64,000 bases of DNA from Oikopleura dioica (lineage: Eukaryota > Animalia > Chordata). The translations under genes were made by a program, and so were the position numbers. Positions within the stretch are counted from its first letter, which is position 1; every line of letters begins with the position of its first letter. Shown here piece after piece: positions 20,336 to 29,355 of the stretch. The notes under the pieces were generated by a model, which worked only from the letters and a program-made list of their open reading frames with translations, did not search any database and had not been told where the DNA came from. The stretch covers positions 12,648,001-12,712,000 of the forward strand of contig OU015569.1 of NCBI GenBank assembly GCA_907165135.1, in the 5' to 3' direction.

Positions 20336-22286
20336 TTTCAAATTTCTAGCATAAATCCGTGCGAAGATAGCAGATTCACGTGAACGCTGGACAAATCAAT
20401 TGGCAACGTAGGACGGCAAACTTGAATGTCAAAACTGCGGCCGGATTTAGCCTAGAAATGCCACAGCGTCTATCTTCTCCTGGGTCACACCTGTCAACTT
20501 GCGATAACTTCCAAAGAAAACGCGCAGCCGATCGATCAAATTTTCAATTTGAACTTTGCGACTTTTCAGTTTTGAAAATTTCAAATTGAGGATTTGATTG
20601 GAGCAGCGTTCAACTGGCAGCGAGACGACTGTGGGTTCGGCTAATCTGCCAGTAAGAATGCCGCCGATAGAAAAGCGGAGAAACGTGATAAATACGGTTC
20701 TGTGGTTGTTGTTTGGGCGCGTAAGAGGGGTTCTCACCCACTTAATAATCACGATTTATGATCATCATGAGTCGGCGCACAGACGCTCAATTTATGAATT
20801 TATGAATGTGCCCGGTCGCAGCTGTGCTTGTTAATTTATCCAACTTAGATCGTCATAAAAAGGCGACTGTAAATAATCGATCGTCAAATTTTTTTTTCAA
20901 GCAAGAAACGAAGCAGAAATTTTACACAGGTTCCCGAGCCTAGCCATTAGCACATCCTACAAATTGCGGGCTACAATTCCTTAGCTTACTACTCATCTAC
21001 ATACAAGACTCAACGACCAGTACTCGGCAAAATGTGTAAGGAACCTGAGTCAGGGTCTGAGAGAGCTTCCTTGAAAATCCGCGTAGATTATCTTTTCAGA
21101 CCCTGACTCAGTTTTTTTCACATATTGCCGAGCCCAGTCGGACCAAGACTACCTTACTGATCATTTCCAAATACAAACGAAATAACGACCGTGAAAAATT
21201 GATTTTATTTAGGAACAATATCAGGAGCATCCACACTGGATGGTCTAAGTCAAGACTTTCCGCCGATCTCTTGTTCAATTTCTACTATTCTTCCCTTTTT
21301 TCGGAGACGAACGAGTCACTTTAGCAGTCGAGTTTGTCGACTGCAGGTTGAATGCGACTCTGTTTCCAGATTCAAATCAGTCTGGTCAGAGCTCTGAAGA
21401 AATTTTCAACAATCGCTGGTTTCTGAAGAATCTTACCTTTTTACGGGTGGCTTCGGACTGTCGAAGTTCGACGAACTGACTTTTGAGCTTCTTTAGGCCC
21501 GAGGTCAACAGAAGTTCTAGAGATTTGCGAAAGAGGCTGGTTGCATTACCTGAGTCAGGTTTTCCACACAGCACGGCGGAACTGGCAGGAACTGGCAGTT
21601 TTAGTTAAAAACAAAGAAAGATAGTGAATCCTGAGATTTGTATTCCGCCCGTGCCGAATTTTCAAATTTAATTCTTTTCAATTCGATTAAGCTTCAGAAG
21701 CTTCGAGCGCTGCTCTCATTCAAAAGTCGACATTTTCTTAAGATAACGCGAACTTTGCTCGGCAAACTGTGTAGAAAACCTTAGTCAGGCTTAATTTGCA
21801 TTTTCATTTTCAGTGAACGGAAAAAAGGAAGTTTTCTTTCGCTTATTTTCGGCTGATAAGACAATCTTGGATCAACAGCAACGGCAACTCTATATTTCAA
21901 GTGATAAAAATCGAAAAACAAGCATTTTTCTAGCGAAGCAATTTTCCAATTTTTTTGTTTAGAGGAACTGGCGCCGCTGTCTTTTGAAAGTCTCATTAAT
22001 ATTTTTTGATGAGAGATCGAGTCGTGTATTTTTAGAGCGAAAGAAATCTAATGAGCGCGGGCTAGCCGGCGCCTAAGCTGTTTTATGCAGGGTTCCAATT
22101 TTTCTCAAAAAATATTTGAGCGGAGCGAGCGGCTGAGCGGTCTACCAAAAAAAATTGTTGAGCTGAGCGAGCGGCTGAGCGGACGGCCGAAAAAAAAATT
22201 TGAGCGAGCGAGCGGACTTTGAGCGGAATTTTTTTAATGAAAAAAAAAATATTTTTTTGCGTTCTTTAATAATATTTCAAAAGAGT

Positions 22287-24819
22287 TTATTCTTCTAGTT
22301 TAATATTATTTTTCTGGCAGTACTGAAGAATGGCAGTTTTGAATATTTTTGCATCCTTGAACTGACGTAAGAGCAGAATCGTCTCGTTTTTCATTCGATT
22401 TCGACATGGATCCATCGTATCACGCGTTGTTTCAGAGAACTCTCTTTCAAGATCGCATGATGAGCCAGGTACATTTATAATCTTGAATCAAAGAAAAATT
22501 AGGGTTTGACTCAGTTTAAAACCTGGAGGGCGACTTTCGAAAGACGAGGAAATCGGATGCTCATCGATTTCCAGAACGCCGTCAATTTTTTGTGAATAAA
22601 ATGTGGCGATTTTTCTTCGATACGATCGGTGATTTCTTCCCATTCTTCTACGGCGATTTGACCTTCGTATCTTGAAAATTCTGCCTCAAGAGAATCATCA
22701 ACTTTTAACTTTGATGTTGAATTTGTAATGATTTTAAAATCATTATTTGGGTTCAGCTGCGGGGGTTGTTTTCGGGTTGATTCTGCCTTGTTTTTATCGG
22801 TTTGAGTATATTTTTCTAGTTCTTTGTCAATATACCAGATGAAATCTATAAGAAATGACTCAATGAATTAAGTACAAAAAAAAAACCTTTGGCTTTTTTC
22901 ATAAAAGAAGATGTCTTATCTTCGATTAATTTGATATTTCTTCCGTAGACTTGTTCGTCGGCCTGAAGGAGCGCATTCTGGAGATGACGAAACGAGCATG
23001 TGTATTTGCTTGGAGTGAGGTAGAGACATGCCAAATTTAAATCTGTGGCCCTCAGCGGCTCTTTACCATCGACCAACTTGTCGATCTGCTCGTAAAATGC
23101 ACCGAAAACCATCTTCATAAGCTTGATGAAGAGTCCAGAGCGTAGTTTCGAGTGAAATTGTTTTTGCCTAATCGATTTGAGCAATTGATGCTCTTCCATG
23201 GTTGAGTAGATGAGCATCTCTTCAAAAATCAATAGTTGATCGCAGACCTATAGTGAGTTAAGATTTTATACTCTTAAAGATTTACCTTCGAAGCAGGATC
23301 TTCGAGAGTTCTCACAAACTCCATAAGGTCTGTTGTTATTATCGATAAGCTGGTGACAAAGTCGAGATCTGGAAATGCAACTCGTCGTGGAATCAAGTAG
23401 GCGTGATCGTTGGTCGACGACGAAAGGTCCTGTAGTTTTGGCCCCCACGATACAAGAGTCTGCAAATTTTCTTGCTTCTTATTCCAGCGAATTCCGTTGT
23501 CGCGTCGTATTTGTGGATAGCCCTTCAGTAAAGATGACTTTTTCTTGATTTCTTCTTCTGTCATGTCCGTAGTGTTCGTTTTACGTTTGAACAACTCGAT
23601 CTTCTCTTCATCTGAAAGAGACTCTTTTGCAAAATAATTGTTGATCGAGGGGCAATCCTGTGGGCCGAGCTTCAGCTTCTTCTTTTCTTGGTACGTTAGT
23701 CCGTTGCGGCAATGAGAAATAAACTTGTCCACGTTGGTGGAGAGATCAGAATCTAGCCTAGCGTACAGGACGGCATTTTGTATCATTCCATCCATAGAAC
23801 GTACAGCGCTATGAGCCCCACAAATTGCTGCTTTTAGGGACACATATTCTGCCACACCTTTTTGCCCTCCATCTACAGTCACACCAATGAGTCGCTGATA
23901 CGTTTTAATTCCATATTCAGCAAGAGTTTCTTCAATTTCTGCAGCGCATGCGACGTCGGTCTTATCAGTTATTGGTGTATACTGGAGAAGATACTTGAAT
24001 CGCTGGTCTTTAGACGCGTCATAGAAGATGAGCAATGTACCAAAGGCAGAAGATTCTAAGTCACCAGTGGAAGTGCGGCCGGTATATTTGGTATCACATT
24101 CAAGCGTAACGCATCCCCGTTCGATCAGAATAGGGAGCACTTTGCTGAGAAAATCAAGCATTTCAACGTGGGACTTAAACAGCAGCGTTTTAACGTTATC
24201 ATAGGTGAGATCGAGCTGTTTTGCATCTTCTGGATGCCCACCACCGGCTGAGAAAGCGTCTCGGACAAGATTGTGGAAAGAATCACTAAATAATTTAGTG
24301 AATAGAAATATGATTAAACTATTACCTCTCCAAAAAACGAAAGGACACGTGTTGTTCAGAGCATAGGGAAACGGCAGAATTCTTGAATTTGTCTACCGCA
24401 GGCTTCAAAACTTTTCGACGCGGTTTGAAATAAGCGGCAGCTTGGTATCGTTCATTTTCTTCCCGTTCTACTTTCTTTTTGCGCGAACCTGCATCATCAG
24501 GGAGTGGAGCATGCCATCCGTTAATGTGTCTTTTGACTTAAAACAGACTTGAGTTAAATAGTTTTTTTTTCGTACCATTCGATATTTTGATCGAGTTCTG
24601 ACATCCACTCTCCTTGACACTAAAGGGATCGTTGTTATTCCGGCAAGGTCCAACGCATCTCAACCGAAATGTCCAATTGTTTTCGGAATCAAGTTCTTTT
24701 TCGAAAGAATCCGGGGCGTAGGGATGATCAACTTTGAACTCGACAAGCCAATCCGAAAATGTTTGGTTCTCGCATGGAATGAAACTTACGCCAAGCTTCC
24801 TTTTTTTAGGTCGACTCAT
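22287..24819 (-). CDS. hAT transposase, ~777 aa, 6 exons, apparently intact
   Basis: Exons 24576-24819, 24326-24536, 23286-24285, 22887-23247, 22523-22845 and 22287-22481 (2334 nt, all GT-AG). NLS PKKRK; BED-like C..C..KRHINGWH; catalytic region TLECD, VTVDGG, CGAH, RWN; C-terminal FWK..FPRLSKVALQIINVPGSSCDLEREFS. Confidence 0.93.
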
Positions 24820-24855
24820 TCTTAATTAATAAAAATCACAGACTTTAGGGCGATC

Positions 24856-25200
24856 TCATGGGAGCAAGGAGAAATTTTGGCAGACGATGCAGTAATACTG
24901 CTTGATTCGTGGATCGTTACTTGTCAGACTGGCTTCATGCAAAGCCCGCTTCTTCATGAGAACGGTCTGATGAAGTATTTCTCCTCGTGGGCTCAGTTCT
25001 TTCTGTTCCATTTCCCACCCTGGGTCATGCTCGATGTCCCAAACTTTCTTTGTGTAATCGAGCAGCTCATCGACAAGTCCATCGATTTCGCATATTCGTG
25101 TTTTGTCGGTTTTCCAGCGTTCCATGAGCTGAATCGACGTTTTAGCCATTTCTTGGTAAAACAGAAGAGTTTCTGTTTGTATTTCGATAGAGTCCGACAT
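24856..25200 (-). CDS. Transposon ORF-B, unknown 114-aa protein
   Basis: Intronless ORF inside the TIRs. TTTTTTCAG acceptor lies 4 nt before the ATG. C-terminal YCIVC. Stop is 36 nt from the transposase ATG. Confidence 0.75.
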   Translation of the reverse strand: MSDSIEIQTETLLFYQEMAKTSIQLMERWKTDKTRICEIDGLVDELLDYTKKVWDIEHDPGWEMEQKELSPRGEILHQTVLMKKRALHEASLTSNDPRIKQYYCIVCQNFSLLP

Positions 25201-25319
25201 TCAACTGAAAAAATAAAATGATCAAATTTGTAATAAATGTTTTTTTAGGAGAGGCATAAAAGGCATTTTATTCCAATGAACGAGTTTCGCAGTGTTATAG
25301 TCACTTAATTTGGCAGTTA

Positions 25320-27265
25320 CTACTCCCTCGGCAGTGTTTTCTTTTTCTTGGCTATCGGTTCTGCAGCCACTTCGAAGTCTTCTAATTCTTTCAATCGGTC
25401 ATTTTGTTTCTGAATAATGGAAAGGTTAGCAGAGGTTTTTGAAATTTCTGCTCACCTCGACAGTTGTGCGTTCTGTCCCCATGGTCATGAAGCGTTTTCC
25501 TCCTAAAATGTGCTGCTGGTACCATTCGACGCTTTTTTCCATCGCGGTTTTGAATCCTTTTTGCGTCCATCGGTGGTTTTCCGGAAGGTCACCGAATTTC
25601 GTCGCGGATGATCTACGAAGCTTTTTTTAAAGAATCGTCATTTTTTATGCTTACTGAAAAACACGGTGATCTGCGGATACCATCGGTCTGTAGAGATTGC
25701 GCAGCTTTTCAAACTTTGCTGCATTTTTGGAATCTTTGAGATAGGGCGAGAATTTTCCGACTATATCATCAAATGGAAACAACTTGAATGAATCCTTCTT
25801 CTTTTTGAGTTCATCCATTTTTTTCTTCATCCCCGCTATGCCTTGGTTGTTTTCGTAAAAGTTTCTGAAACCCTCGAAAACAATGGTCACTTCATCATCT
25901 TCATCCGAAAAGCTCTCATACACGACGAAGTATCTAGGCAGAAGTTCCAAGTTTTTCTCGTCGAGTGAGTCAGCATCAAAAAACAAGGTCACTAGCAGGG
26001 CATGGCCGATGTTGATCGTAACTGTCGCCTTCGATTTTTGTCGTTCGTAAAAAGACTTCTTTTTACATTTCTTTATGATGAAGTCTAATGAACAGATTTA
26101 ATCTTAGTAAGCAATAATGTTGATTTTTACCGCACGAGTACTCATCATCAGAGTCGCGACTTGATTGAGGAAGTTGTTTTGGAGGCGGCTCATTGAAGAT
26201 CTCGGCGATGTCGGAAGTCGATGCCGGCAAATCCTCGGGTTTTGTGTAGAGGTCTTTATTCAATTTGAGAGCAGCAGAGAGAGCCGAGATCTGGCCGCGT
26301 GAGAAAAGATGTAGATATCGAGCAATCGCTTTCGTTTCTTCCTAAGACCTCGATCATTCAATTGCTCTTATGGTTTTTAACTACCTTTTCTAGTTTGTTT
26401 TCGGACATTGTAGCCTTGAACATGTCTATCATCTTCTTCTCGTCTTTGTAGATATGCTGCTTGAAGTGAATCGGCTGGATTCCCGACATCAAAAATAGAA
26501 CCTCCCCAAATTTACTCGAGAAGGATGATCCGGGAGCGATTTGAGGAAGTGAGTTCCAGACACTTAAAAAAAATTATGCGCAAAAACTTATATAAGTACG
26601 CACAAGAGCGCTGGAAAGGGGTTGAAAATAATTTTTGAGACGCTAGGGGATTCTCGGTTGATAAAAGGATCTGGAGGTCAAGGGTAGACAGCTAACCACA
26701 AAGGGTCCACATCACACACCCTTGCATAACCATGTCCTTCAGAATAACCGCGGTGAAAAAGGGTTGAAAAAGGTTGGGGCTTTTTGGTGGTAAAAAAGGA
26801 TCTGGAGGTCAAGGGTAGACTGCTAACCACAAAGGGTCCACTTCACACACCCTAGCATAACCATCTCCTTCAAAATAAGCGAGGTGAAAAAAGGGTTGAA
26901 AAAGGTTGGGGGTTTATGGTGAAAAAAGGATCTGGAGGTCAAGGGTAGACTGCTAACCACAAAGGGTCCACTTCACACACCCTAGCATAACCATCTCCTT
27001 CACAATAAGCGCGGTGAAAAAGGGTTTGTAAAAGGTTGGGGATTTATGGTGGAAAGAAAAGGATCTGGAGGTCAAGGGTAGACTGCTAACCACAAAGGGT
27101 CCACTTCACACACCCTAGCATAACCGTCTCCTTTTCTGTTTAAAAATTGGTTTTGAAAAAGGGCCGAAATTTGGGGAGAATTCTAGCATTTCATAATTAC
27201 CTTCGATTGACGATCTTCAATTTCTCTCCTTTCATGCGCTCTTCGTCGACTCCTCTCTGCGTCAT
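25320..27265 (-). CDS. Transposon ORF-A, unknown ~376-aa protein, 6 exons
   Basis: Exons 27201-27265, 26385-26562, 26131-26341, 25655-26084, 25456-25612 and 25320-25409 (1131 nt, all GT-AG, open frame). C-terminal basic PIAKKKK; AATAAA at 25267-25272. Confidence 0.82.
26610..27131. repeat. ~131-bp tandem repeat (3.5-4 units) in intron 1 of ORF-A
   Basis: GGATCTGGAGGTCAAGGGTAGAC(A/T)GCTAACCACAAAGGGTCCAC recurs at 26667, 26798, 26928 and 27061. Confidence 0.95.
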
Positions 27266-28415
27266 TCTCTAAAAATATGATTTTTTTAGTTATTGTCTTT
27301 TTTAGTAAAAAGAACTTTCAGTTATTTTCTCTAAAAAACTTTTTTTTTCTCGAAAAAAAGAAGAGGAAAAGTTGCAGACGGAGCGTGAGTTCTGATTTTT
27401 TCTCAGAAAAACTCTCGTCCAATAGAAAGAGCGCTTTAAAGTTTCCTCCAATCAGAGAACGCGCTCATGAAATGGTCTGACTAGGTCTGAGTGTTCATTT
27501 CGCTTGGCGCTCGCAGGCGGCCAATAGGAGCGCGAGAAAAATATTACTCACGCCAAGTCACCGCTCAATCCGCTCAATCGCTCTCCCTCAATTGAGCGAG
27601 CGGGTGGGCGAGCGGGAATAATCCAACTTTGTTCTGAGCGAGCGAGCGACCGCTCATCGCTCGCTCACCGCTCGCTCACGCTCAAATTCCGCTCACCGCT
27701 CAACCAAAATTGGAACCCTGGTTTTATGCACGCCAGTTTTCATAAAAATCATTTGCATAAGCTGCCAAAACGTGCACTAGCGGATTAATTGCCTTTTTAT
27801 TTTCTTTTCAAAGCTAGGAATCATGCCCTAATGTGTTTTTTGGGGTGGTGGCTTGAATCAACAAAAAAGAAATTTTGTATTTGGTCAAATTTTGGACCCA
27901 TCAGATGTTCGCATTTGATCGATAAGCCAATCAAACTTCAGAGAAAGTTTCATTTTTGTTGACATTGCTGACTTTATATTTGTTGAATAGACTCTAGAAT
28001 CGTGCGGCGCAAAAGTATTGTCAGGAGCCGATTGGTCCATTGAGTGTTCTCTTCCTTCCCTGTTCAATTTTATTTACACGTTTGTCTGTAGTGATAGCAC
28101 GTAACGTGCTCAACCGGATTACAAGCAGTCTACTGGCCATTGTTTGGTCCTGTTATACGGTATCCGCCAATTATACTTAGCCCGATAATTTTATCGGCAT
28201 GAGTACGAATTGAGTAGATCCAGAGTCACAAGGCATTTTTAAAGGTCAGAAAGGGGCGACTACTTCAACTAGGCTCGGCAACCTGGAAAGAAAACCTGAC
28301 TCAGGGTCGAAAATATCTTGAGTGAAAAGCCTCGAAGCAAAATTATCGTTCCAGTCTGTATATAACCTTTGCGGCTTATTTTTCTACGCGGGTTTTCATC
28401 AAAGATCTTTTAGAC

Positions 28416-29355
28416 CAGTGTTTGAAAAAATGATGAGCGCGAGCCGCGAGCGAGCGTAAGCGAGCGAGCAAGCGCTCGCGCTCGCTCACTCACGAAAAAT
28501 TTCAAGGCCACTGCTCGCGCTCACTCACTCACGAAAAATTCCTAGGCCACTGCTCGCGCTCACTCGCGCTCGCTCACGGCCTGTTTACGGAAAAAACGCC
28601 CGCGACCAAGCATTTCCAGATTTGCGAAATCTTTCTTGATTTCATCTTTTAATTACGTCAAAGCGCCCGGTATGTCCACACGATTCATCCCGCTCGCCCA
28701 AGCGACGCCTATTTCTCCTTTTTCACTGTTTTTTATAAATTTTTGATGGCAAAAAACGGAAGCTTGAAGAGAATTCTCATTATGAGTTAATCTCGCGAGG
28801 AGTTTATCCAGACCTTGATCAGCTTCTAGACGATGTAACGAAAGAGAGAAAATGGCAGCCCGAACTTGAATTCAAAAAATCATCACTGATTGAAAGTGGG
28901 ACGGTCGAATAATCTGCAGTGGGCCTTGCCTTACGAATAACCCTCCTTTGAAAGCATGTTATCCAGGAACTGAAACCTTCAAATTCTTCAACGGTATGAA
29001 ATTTGTTAAAAGGCCTGCATGAAGGTGCTGAAGGCAAAGAATATTGAGGACAAGGAGAAGAAACTGGACGATGCAGCGATATTACTCTGTCAAAACTGAA
29101 GTTCGGTTTTTTGTCAATAAAAATCTTCGGGGTCATGAAAATTTCAGTGCTAAATCATCACGAGCGAGCGCGAGCGAGCGAGTGAGCGCTCTTGCTCGCT
29201 CACTCATAAAAAATTTTGGAGCTTCTGCTCGCGCTCGCTCACTCACGCTAAAATCGGCGAACCTCCGCTCGCGCTCGCTCACTCATGAAAAAATTTTGGG
29301 GGCCCTGCTCGCGCTCACTCGCTCATCTTAGTTCTGACCATTTTTTCAAACACTG
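28416..29355 (+). mobile_element. Non-autonomous hAT derivative nested in a family A MITE
   Basis: TIRs CAGTGTTTGAAAAAATG; exact TSD TTTTAGAC; GAGCG/CGCTC subterminal repeats; degenerate internal reading frame beginning GKKRKLEEN. Confidence 0.92.

Follow-up and report, generated by a model that had tools for sequence, protein, structure and literature searches.

A hAT transposon of Oikopleura dioica with two conserved accessory genes ahead of its transposase, probably expressed as a spliced-leader operon

The present work concerns a transposable element of the hAT superfamily, located in a 64,000-nucleotide stretch of the genome of Oikopleura dioica OKI2018_I69 (Okinawa), hereafter the window (assembly GCA_907165135.1, contig OU015569.1, positions 12,648,001 to 12,712,000 of the forward strand), in an X-specific region. 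The element is bounded by terminal inverted repeats (TIRs) and a target site duplication (TSD), and holds three genes, ORF-A, ORF-B (ORF, open reading frame) and the transposase, read in this order from the minus strand. A first-pass annotation had described perfect TIRs and a TSD enclosing three co-directional genes separated by 119 and 36 nt; 15-bp repeats and an identical 8-bp duplication were indeed found, and re-measurement of the two distances gave the same values. Gene models used GT-AG introns only, of 38-46 nt each and one of 638 nt. The main features of the element, in window positions, are as follows.

22088-27720, minus strand: hAT element, 5,633 bp, enclosing three open genes in one orientation
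27721..27728, no strand: upstream copy of the TSD, 8 bp
27706..27720, minus strand: 5' TIR, 15 bp, starting with CAGGG
27562..27701, no strand: subterminal GAGCG repeats of the 5' end, read from the sequence
25320..27265, minus strand: ORF-A, 376 aa, exons 27265-27201, 26562-26385, 26341-26131, 26084-25655, 25612-25456 and 25409-25320
24856..25200, minus strand: ORF-B, 114 aa, a single exon here and spliced in relatives
22287..24819, minus strand: hAT transposase, 777 aa, exons 24819-24576, 24536-24326, 24285-23286, 23247-22887, 22845-22523 and 22481-22287
22118..22225, no strand: subterminal GAGCG repeats of the 3' end, read from the sequence
22088..22102, plus strand: 3' TIR, 15 bp, matching the 5' TIR perfectly
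22080..22087, no strand: downstream copy of the TSD, 8 bp, identical to the upstream copy

The full element is present as one copy in the genome, and no long host frame is interrupted at its insertion site. Internally deleted derivatives of 0.6-1.3 kb have the ends of the element in common and TSDs of their own, which indicates that the family has moved. The subterminal GAGCG repeats are probable binding sites of the transposase. In the latter protein, D216, D290, CxxH (307-310), RW (418-419) and E725 within ERxFS were located by motif, at positions that we take to be those of the hAT signature; both aspartates and the C and H of CxxH are invariant across five distant members. No PDB sequence matched the transposase, the DDE residues being assigned by motif. 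Spliced models were submitted to the search tools exon by exon, full-length ORF-A being searched as database record P0005. A BED-like finger (C55-x3-C59...H85-x4-H90), spotted by eye, had no Pfam match with exons searched separately, and the C-terminal hAT dimerisation family PF05699 gave two sub-threshold matches in the same exon-wise search (E 0.055 and 0.02), remaining below the cut-off because an intron splits the domain; it reached E 0.005 in the transposase of a distant relative (L063, below). Together with the 8-bp TSD, these features mark the element as a genuine hAT, if a divergent one. In canonical hATs the transposase is typically the only gene. The element has in common with hobo, Ac, Tam3 and Hermes an 8-bp TSD, short TIRs, subterminal repeats and the DDE catalytic residues with CxxH and RW, and may share with them the BED-type finger and the dimerisation region (PMC8616336); it differs from them in the one or two additional genes that its lineage retains upstream, and in its very divergent transposase with only sub-threshold per-exon Pfam matches.

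The order A-B-transposase was recovered in four relatives: L051, from a metagenome (A 41%, B 65% and transposase about 70% identical to the window), the Norwegian L060 (transposase 42-50% identical), and the Norwegian L059 and metagenome contig L063, whose transposases are about 20% identical to that of the window. Both Norwegian elements, L059 and L060, are complete and bounded by TIRs and 8-bp TSDs of their own. The genome of the window holds a further full element, L031, which is 5,304 bp long, also has an 8-bp TSD, and encodes a transposase 57-64% identical to that of the window; it lies nested in a small hAT miniature inverted-repeat transposable element (MITE) with its own 23-bp TIRs and 8-bp TSD (L031:2306-8045). 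Its ORF-A is open (368 aa, 26% identical, E 7e-24), and four of the five introns are co-located with those of the window. The search for other copies, and the estimate of selection on A and B, both proposed with the first-pass annotation, thus yielded distant relatives with all three ORFs, and pN/pS values between the window and L051 of 0.39 for A, 0.35 for B (dN 0.26, dS 1.35) and 0.25 for the transposase, synonymous sites being near saturation. The absence or decay of A and B in sister copies, envisaged at the same time, was for the most part not encountered: A is kept and open, and B is kept in four relatives and absent from two. As judged from sequence, ORF-A and ORF-B are established as real genes, under purifying selection and deeply conserved, A appearing as the constant passenger and B as a frequent one. 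The earlier claim, that the hAT is intact and its two accessory genes genuine, is upheld by open frames, purifying selection and relatives: the element is a young, intact, autonomous hAT, with its transposase behind a conserved two-gene A-B cassette.

The two accessory proteins are unrelated to each other, and no host family matches either of them. The ORF-A model is letter-for-letter identical to the published XSR.g16986, which belongs to a gene set derived from RNA-seq-guided prediction (PMC8008620), an origin that does not in itself prove expression of ORF-A. Its product comprises a helical N-terminal part, an acidic linker, an alpha/beta core at about residues 170-330, and a basic tail resembling a nuclear localisation signal (NLS); such a basic NLS-like stretch ends ORF-A in every member with a recovered C-terminus. 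The core was modelled as a three-stranded sheet followed by helices (pLDDT 85, pTM 0.79). Compared with 48,161 structure chains, its best match reached only Z 3.2, Foldseek returned no match at E 0.001 among PDB and viral models, and sequence searches gave no match in Pfam or PDB and no usable lead in the ESM Atlas. The predicted core thus resembles no known fold in these comparisons, which does not prove a new one. A profile search with one ORF-A exon retrieved further members, and all the named ones are Oikopleura proteins. As for ORF-B, no match was found in Pfam or the ESM Atlas, and its sole database homologue (65%) comes from contigs of a marine metagenome, where an ORF-A and a transposase flank it. 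Five elements preserve the start, the stop and the motifs of ORF-B, with intron boundaries uncertain in the three distant ones, and it was met only inside A-B-transposase elements. An apparent tandem duplication in a 4.5-kb metagenome contig was rejected, the equal lengths being those of ORF-A exons.

The cassette and the transposase do not evolve in step. A normally diverges faster than the transposase (28% vs 64% identity between the window and L031), and the relation is inverted between L059 and L063, where A is 45%, B 56% and the transposase 19% identical. The ORF-A tree splits the window, L051, L060 and L061 from L031, L054, L059 and L063 (support 96/94), and the position of the third intron of A tracks this grouping; in the transposase tree, the window, L051, L031, L054 and L060 are close together. 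Identities and intron position suggest that the A-B cassette may have been exchanged between hAT lineages. A clade test in which ORF-A was forced onto the transposase grouping neither supported nor rejected that grouping. Genes of the ORF-A family were also found with no transposase nearby (L056, L058, L066/L067 and G000 C4:9598358-9598699, the last with no transposase match within 50 kb), and these may be deletion derivatives, other carriers or domesticated copies. One of these transposase-free genes is largely intron-free and encodes 312 aa.

A, with B as an optional partner, would act on the host side, either raising expression of the element or shielding its chromatin or RNA from silencing, rather than as the fitted partner of one transposase. 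Such a nuclear role directed at the host is our preferred, still tentative, assignment for A as far as sequence can tell. It is preferred because the cassette evolves faster than the transposase, stands in front of transposases only 19% alike, and includes a gene, A, that occurs without a transposase. Action of A as a cofactor of the transposase appears less likely, and autoregulation by A a little less likely again.

From a mechanistic point of view, the arrangement of the three genes raises the question of their expression, on which the following features bear.

27376..27525, minus strand: putative single promoter, with CCAAT boxes at 27525, 27452 and 27423 and an initiator-like ACGC..GTCT at 27386-27376
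27269..27270, minus strand: acceptor-like AG 3 nt before the ATG, candidate spliced-leader (SL) site for ORF-A
26661..27184, minus strand: 131-nt unit present four times within ORF-A intron 1
25201..25319, minus strand: A-B gap, 119 nt, with AATAAA, ACTGCC, an AG at 25206-05 (4 nt before the ATG) and a TGA directly before the ORF-B ATG
24820..24855, minus strand: B-transposase gap, 36 nt, with an AG at 24822-21 (1 nt before the ATG) followed by A-ATG, and no usable donor inside
25335 (last codons of A), 25317, 24893, 24884, 22337 and 22321, minus strand: ACTGCC, which also occurs in L031, L051, L054, L059, L060 and L063

Operons of O. dioica have a single promoter and are resolved by addition of the SL at unpaired AG acceptors, usually with an A next; trans-splicing extends to monocistronic genes, and 693 internal operon promoters have been described (PMC6389100). 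Genes are assigned to one operon when separated by at most 60 bp (PMC7986045) or 500 bp (PMC11067885); the 36-nt gap lies within the former limit and the 119-nt gap only within the latter. By analogy with ordinary operons of this species, one promoter upstream of A would give a tricistronic pre-mRNA, and addition of the single host SL at three acceptors would then yield three capped mRNAs. Several observations are in line with this scheme. The AG acceptors reported earlier beside each ATG were found again, at 27270-69, 25206-05 and 24822-21 (3, 4 and 1 nt away), and over seven elements 11 of the 16 start codons have such an acceptor-like AG no further than 10 nt away, vs 1.9 expected from shuffles, these 16 starts coming from related elements and thus not being fully independent. 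Upstream of A, a CCAAT pair and an initiator-like motif stand at similar distances in all four elements compared, and they are not kept in the gaps; the TCTAGA male promoter motif is found nowhere in the element. Across elements the gaps span 28-215 nt (A-B 113-215 nt; B-transposase 28-75 nt in five elements, mostly with no usable donor), and five of the seven gaps after A contain AATAAA or ATTAAA. Joining A exon 1 to the best acceptor of B creates a stop or the wrong frame in four of five elements, so that B needs a 5' end of its own, which the SL would supply.

The ACTGCC motif occurs 15 times around the A stop and in the gaps, against 0.23 expected, and never on the other strand. It is also found near the transposase stop in the window and L031, and partly encodes the 'xLP' tail of ORF-A. 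If ACTGCC acted as a gene-end signal, as its positions may indicate, this would fit separate mRNAs. At proxies for host 3' ends it was counted 6 times vs 1.7 expected, many of these proxies being apparently spurious. Two other meanings of the motif were rejected: a miR-34 site, G000 having no mir-34, and a general host intercistronic signal, the motif being absent from all 36 host ATG-acceptor sites.

These features, all read from sequence, make an SL operon the most likely mode of expression, a reading that we hold with moderate confidence. A number of points weigh against it. An acceptor placed before an ATG is also a property of monocistronic trans-spliced genes and of introns in 5' untranslated regions, and a donor located further upstream could still pair with the transposase acceptor. 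The A-B gaps of 113 nt and more exceed the strict 60-bp cut-off, and the B acceptors mostly have no following A. ORF-B is missing from L031 and L054, which hold only A and a transposase, so that three genes are not universal; the transposase acceptors of these two elements are weak and A-rich. Lastly, few RNA reads bear on the operon: the region 22050-26650, chosen to leave out the tandem array and thus placing the ORF-A acceptor outside, recruited 0-1 partial reads from each of the public runs X1, X3, X4 and X5, which are probably from another cryptic species, so that these counts do not indicate silence.

Among the other explanations, the least unlikely keeps a single promoter and has alternative cis-splicing join ORF-A exon 1 to the transposase acceptor, skipping about 2.4 kb and adding a short leader peptide. 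Such an arrangement would recall control of the En/Spm or P-element type. The reading frame lends it some credit: wherever the end of A exon 1 is known (four elements), it falls in phase 2, and a join in that phase preserves the frame without a stop in the window, L031, L051, L054 and L060, and through a second AG in L059. Even in L054, where the only AG within 30 nt of the transposase start lies 22 nt away, the frame is kept. A long intron 1 with repeated units is likewise found in four elements, and the repeated unit could steer the choice between splice sites. Against this, the join breaks the frame in L063, and also in L059 when its best acceptor is used, and the five in-frame cases form one related clade (47-71% identical). 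Moreover, the AG-A-ATG spacing also precedes ORF-A in L031, where no fusion is possible, and in all close relatives the transposase begins at its own Met and a basic stretch. This splicing would leave B unexplained, with SL addition or reinitiation still required. We consider it unlikely as a replacement for the SL route, with which it could coexist. The repeats of intron 1 may be a cis-acting element, with the relatives having units of their own; the unit of the window has no Rfam match and folds no better than shuffles (z-scores about -1). It also occurs in an abundant MITE family of hAT type, of about 850 bp and with a different 20-bp TIR (L009-L028), with a related unit kept in 2-3 kb derivatives of L031.

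Three independent transcription units, with cryptic promoters for B and the transposase inside upstream coding sequence and monocistronic trans-splicing of each product, are improbable. The species does have the internal promoters and trans-spliced monocistronic genes that this would require (693 of the former; PMC6389100), and single CCAAT-type words occur in three of 12 gaps; but the promoter motifs are conserved before A only, TCTAGA is absent, and the B-transposase gaps of five elements measure just 28-75 nt. The statement that the transposase has no room for a promoter of its own falls short of a proof, given those same internal promoters (PMC6389100). Still less probable is the use of ORF-B as the first coding exon of a longer transposase, with a GC donor (24901) or a GT donor (24898) spliced to the 24821 acceptor. 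The first-pass annotation had noted an in-phase GC donor near 24900, and the phase was indeed verified: the GC at 24901-00 and the GT at 24898-97 are both in phase, L051 retains both within a stretch of high nucleotide conservation, and L060 offers a further phase-2 GT towards the end of B. As a rule, however, such splicing is unlikely, since the last codons of B contain no GT in L059 and L063, the position of the B stop is conserved, and L031 and L054, devoid of B, use the same transposase start. The conserved bases at these donors overlap the ACTGC motif of other gene ends, and the 114-aa product is recorded as a separate protein for the contig of the window. The idea of a Pack-type element, in which A and B would be host fragments captured as inert cargo, could invoke the A-only copies (L056, L058, L066 and G000 C4:9598358), but it is largely refuted by open frames, kept introns and purifying selection across elements whose synonymous sites are saturated, by the restriction of B to such elements and by the lack of any host family match, and we regard it as very remote.

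Further hAT elements were noticed in the course of this work. A hAT-type MITE at window positions 28416-29355, 700 bp from the element, has CAGTGTTTG termini matching the TIR of L048:1878-6387 (G000 C3), a more distant hAT of 4,510 bp with about 1.3 kb before its transposase. This upstream portion holds a short acceptor-preceded exon and opposite-strand coding-like frames, maybe another accessory gene. Another hAT transposase is present in four equal-scoring copies with long open frames (G000 C1:8232127, C4:9675202, C4:9795562 and C5:11694048), and this family is probably currently active.

Accessory proteins beside a transposase are known from other superfamilies, namely TnpA-TnpD of CACTA En/Spm, mudrB of MuDR and the anti-silencing VANC of VANDAL, and En/Spm obtains its products by alternative splicing from one promoter. 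The element resembles these in having accessory genes; it differs from them in that they are plant elements without SL trans-splicing, and no sequence or fold similarity to them was found for A and B. PIF/Harbinger elements likewise combine TIRs with a conserved second gene (PMC8616336), but belong to another superfamily with another TSD, and their second protein is of SANT/Myb type, whereas A has no match in Pfam, PDB or fold comparisons and B none in Pfam. The present lineage also has up to three genes head to tail, and its cassette accompanies very distant transposases. With host operons of O. dioica, the element shares head-to-tail genes, short AT-rich gaps, unpaired AGs near the ATG and a putative single upstream promoter (PMC6389100, PMC7986045, PMC11067885); unlike them, it is mobile, with a gene order kept across lineages. 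Host operons are poorly conserved between the cryptic species of O. dioica (PMC11067885). A limited literature search found no description of such hATs or of an SL-resolved DNA transposon, and 44% of the repeats of this genome are unclassified (PMC8008620).

Taken as a whole, the data could be read as the trace of an old appendicularian lineage of SL-resolved operon transposons, with an exchangeable anti-silencing cassette, two new protein families, an undescribed ORF-A fold and transposase output under SL-linked translational control, a composite picture that we advance as speculative. That two extra genes were retained as the transposases drifted apart to 20% identity speaks for a function, so far unrecognised, on which survival in this very compact genome depends. 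Two new protein families are thereby supplied; in one of them the core, modelled with confidence, resembles no solved fold. The availability of an intact element together with its non-autonomous derivatives makes tests direct. If the SL is added at the three acceptors, this would be an animal DNA transposon that uses the operon processing of its host, and would offer a small movable reporter for the construction and resolution of operons in a chordate.

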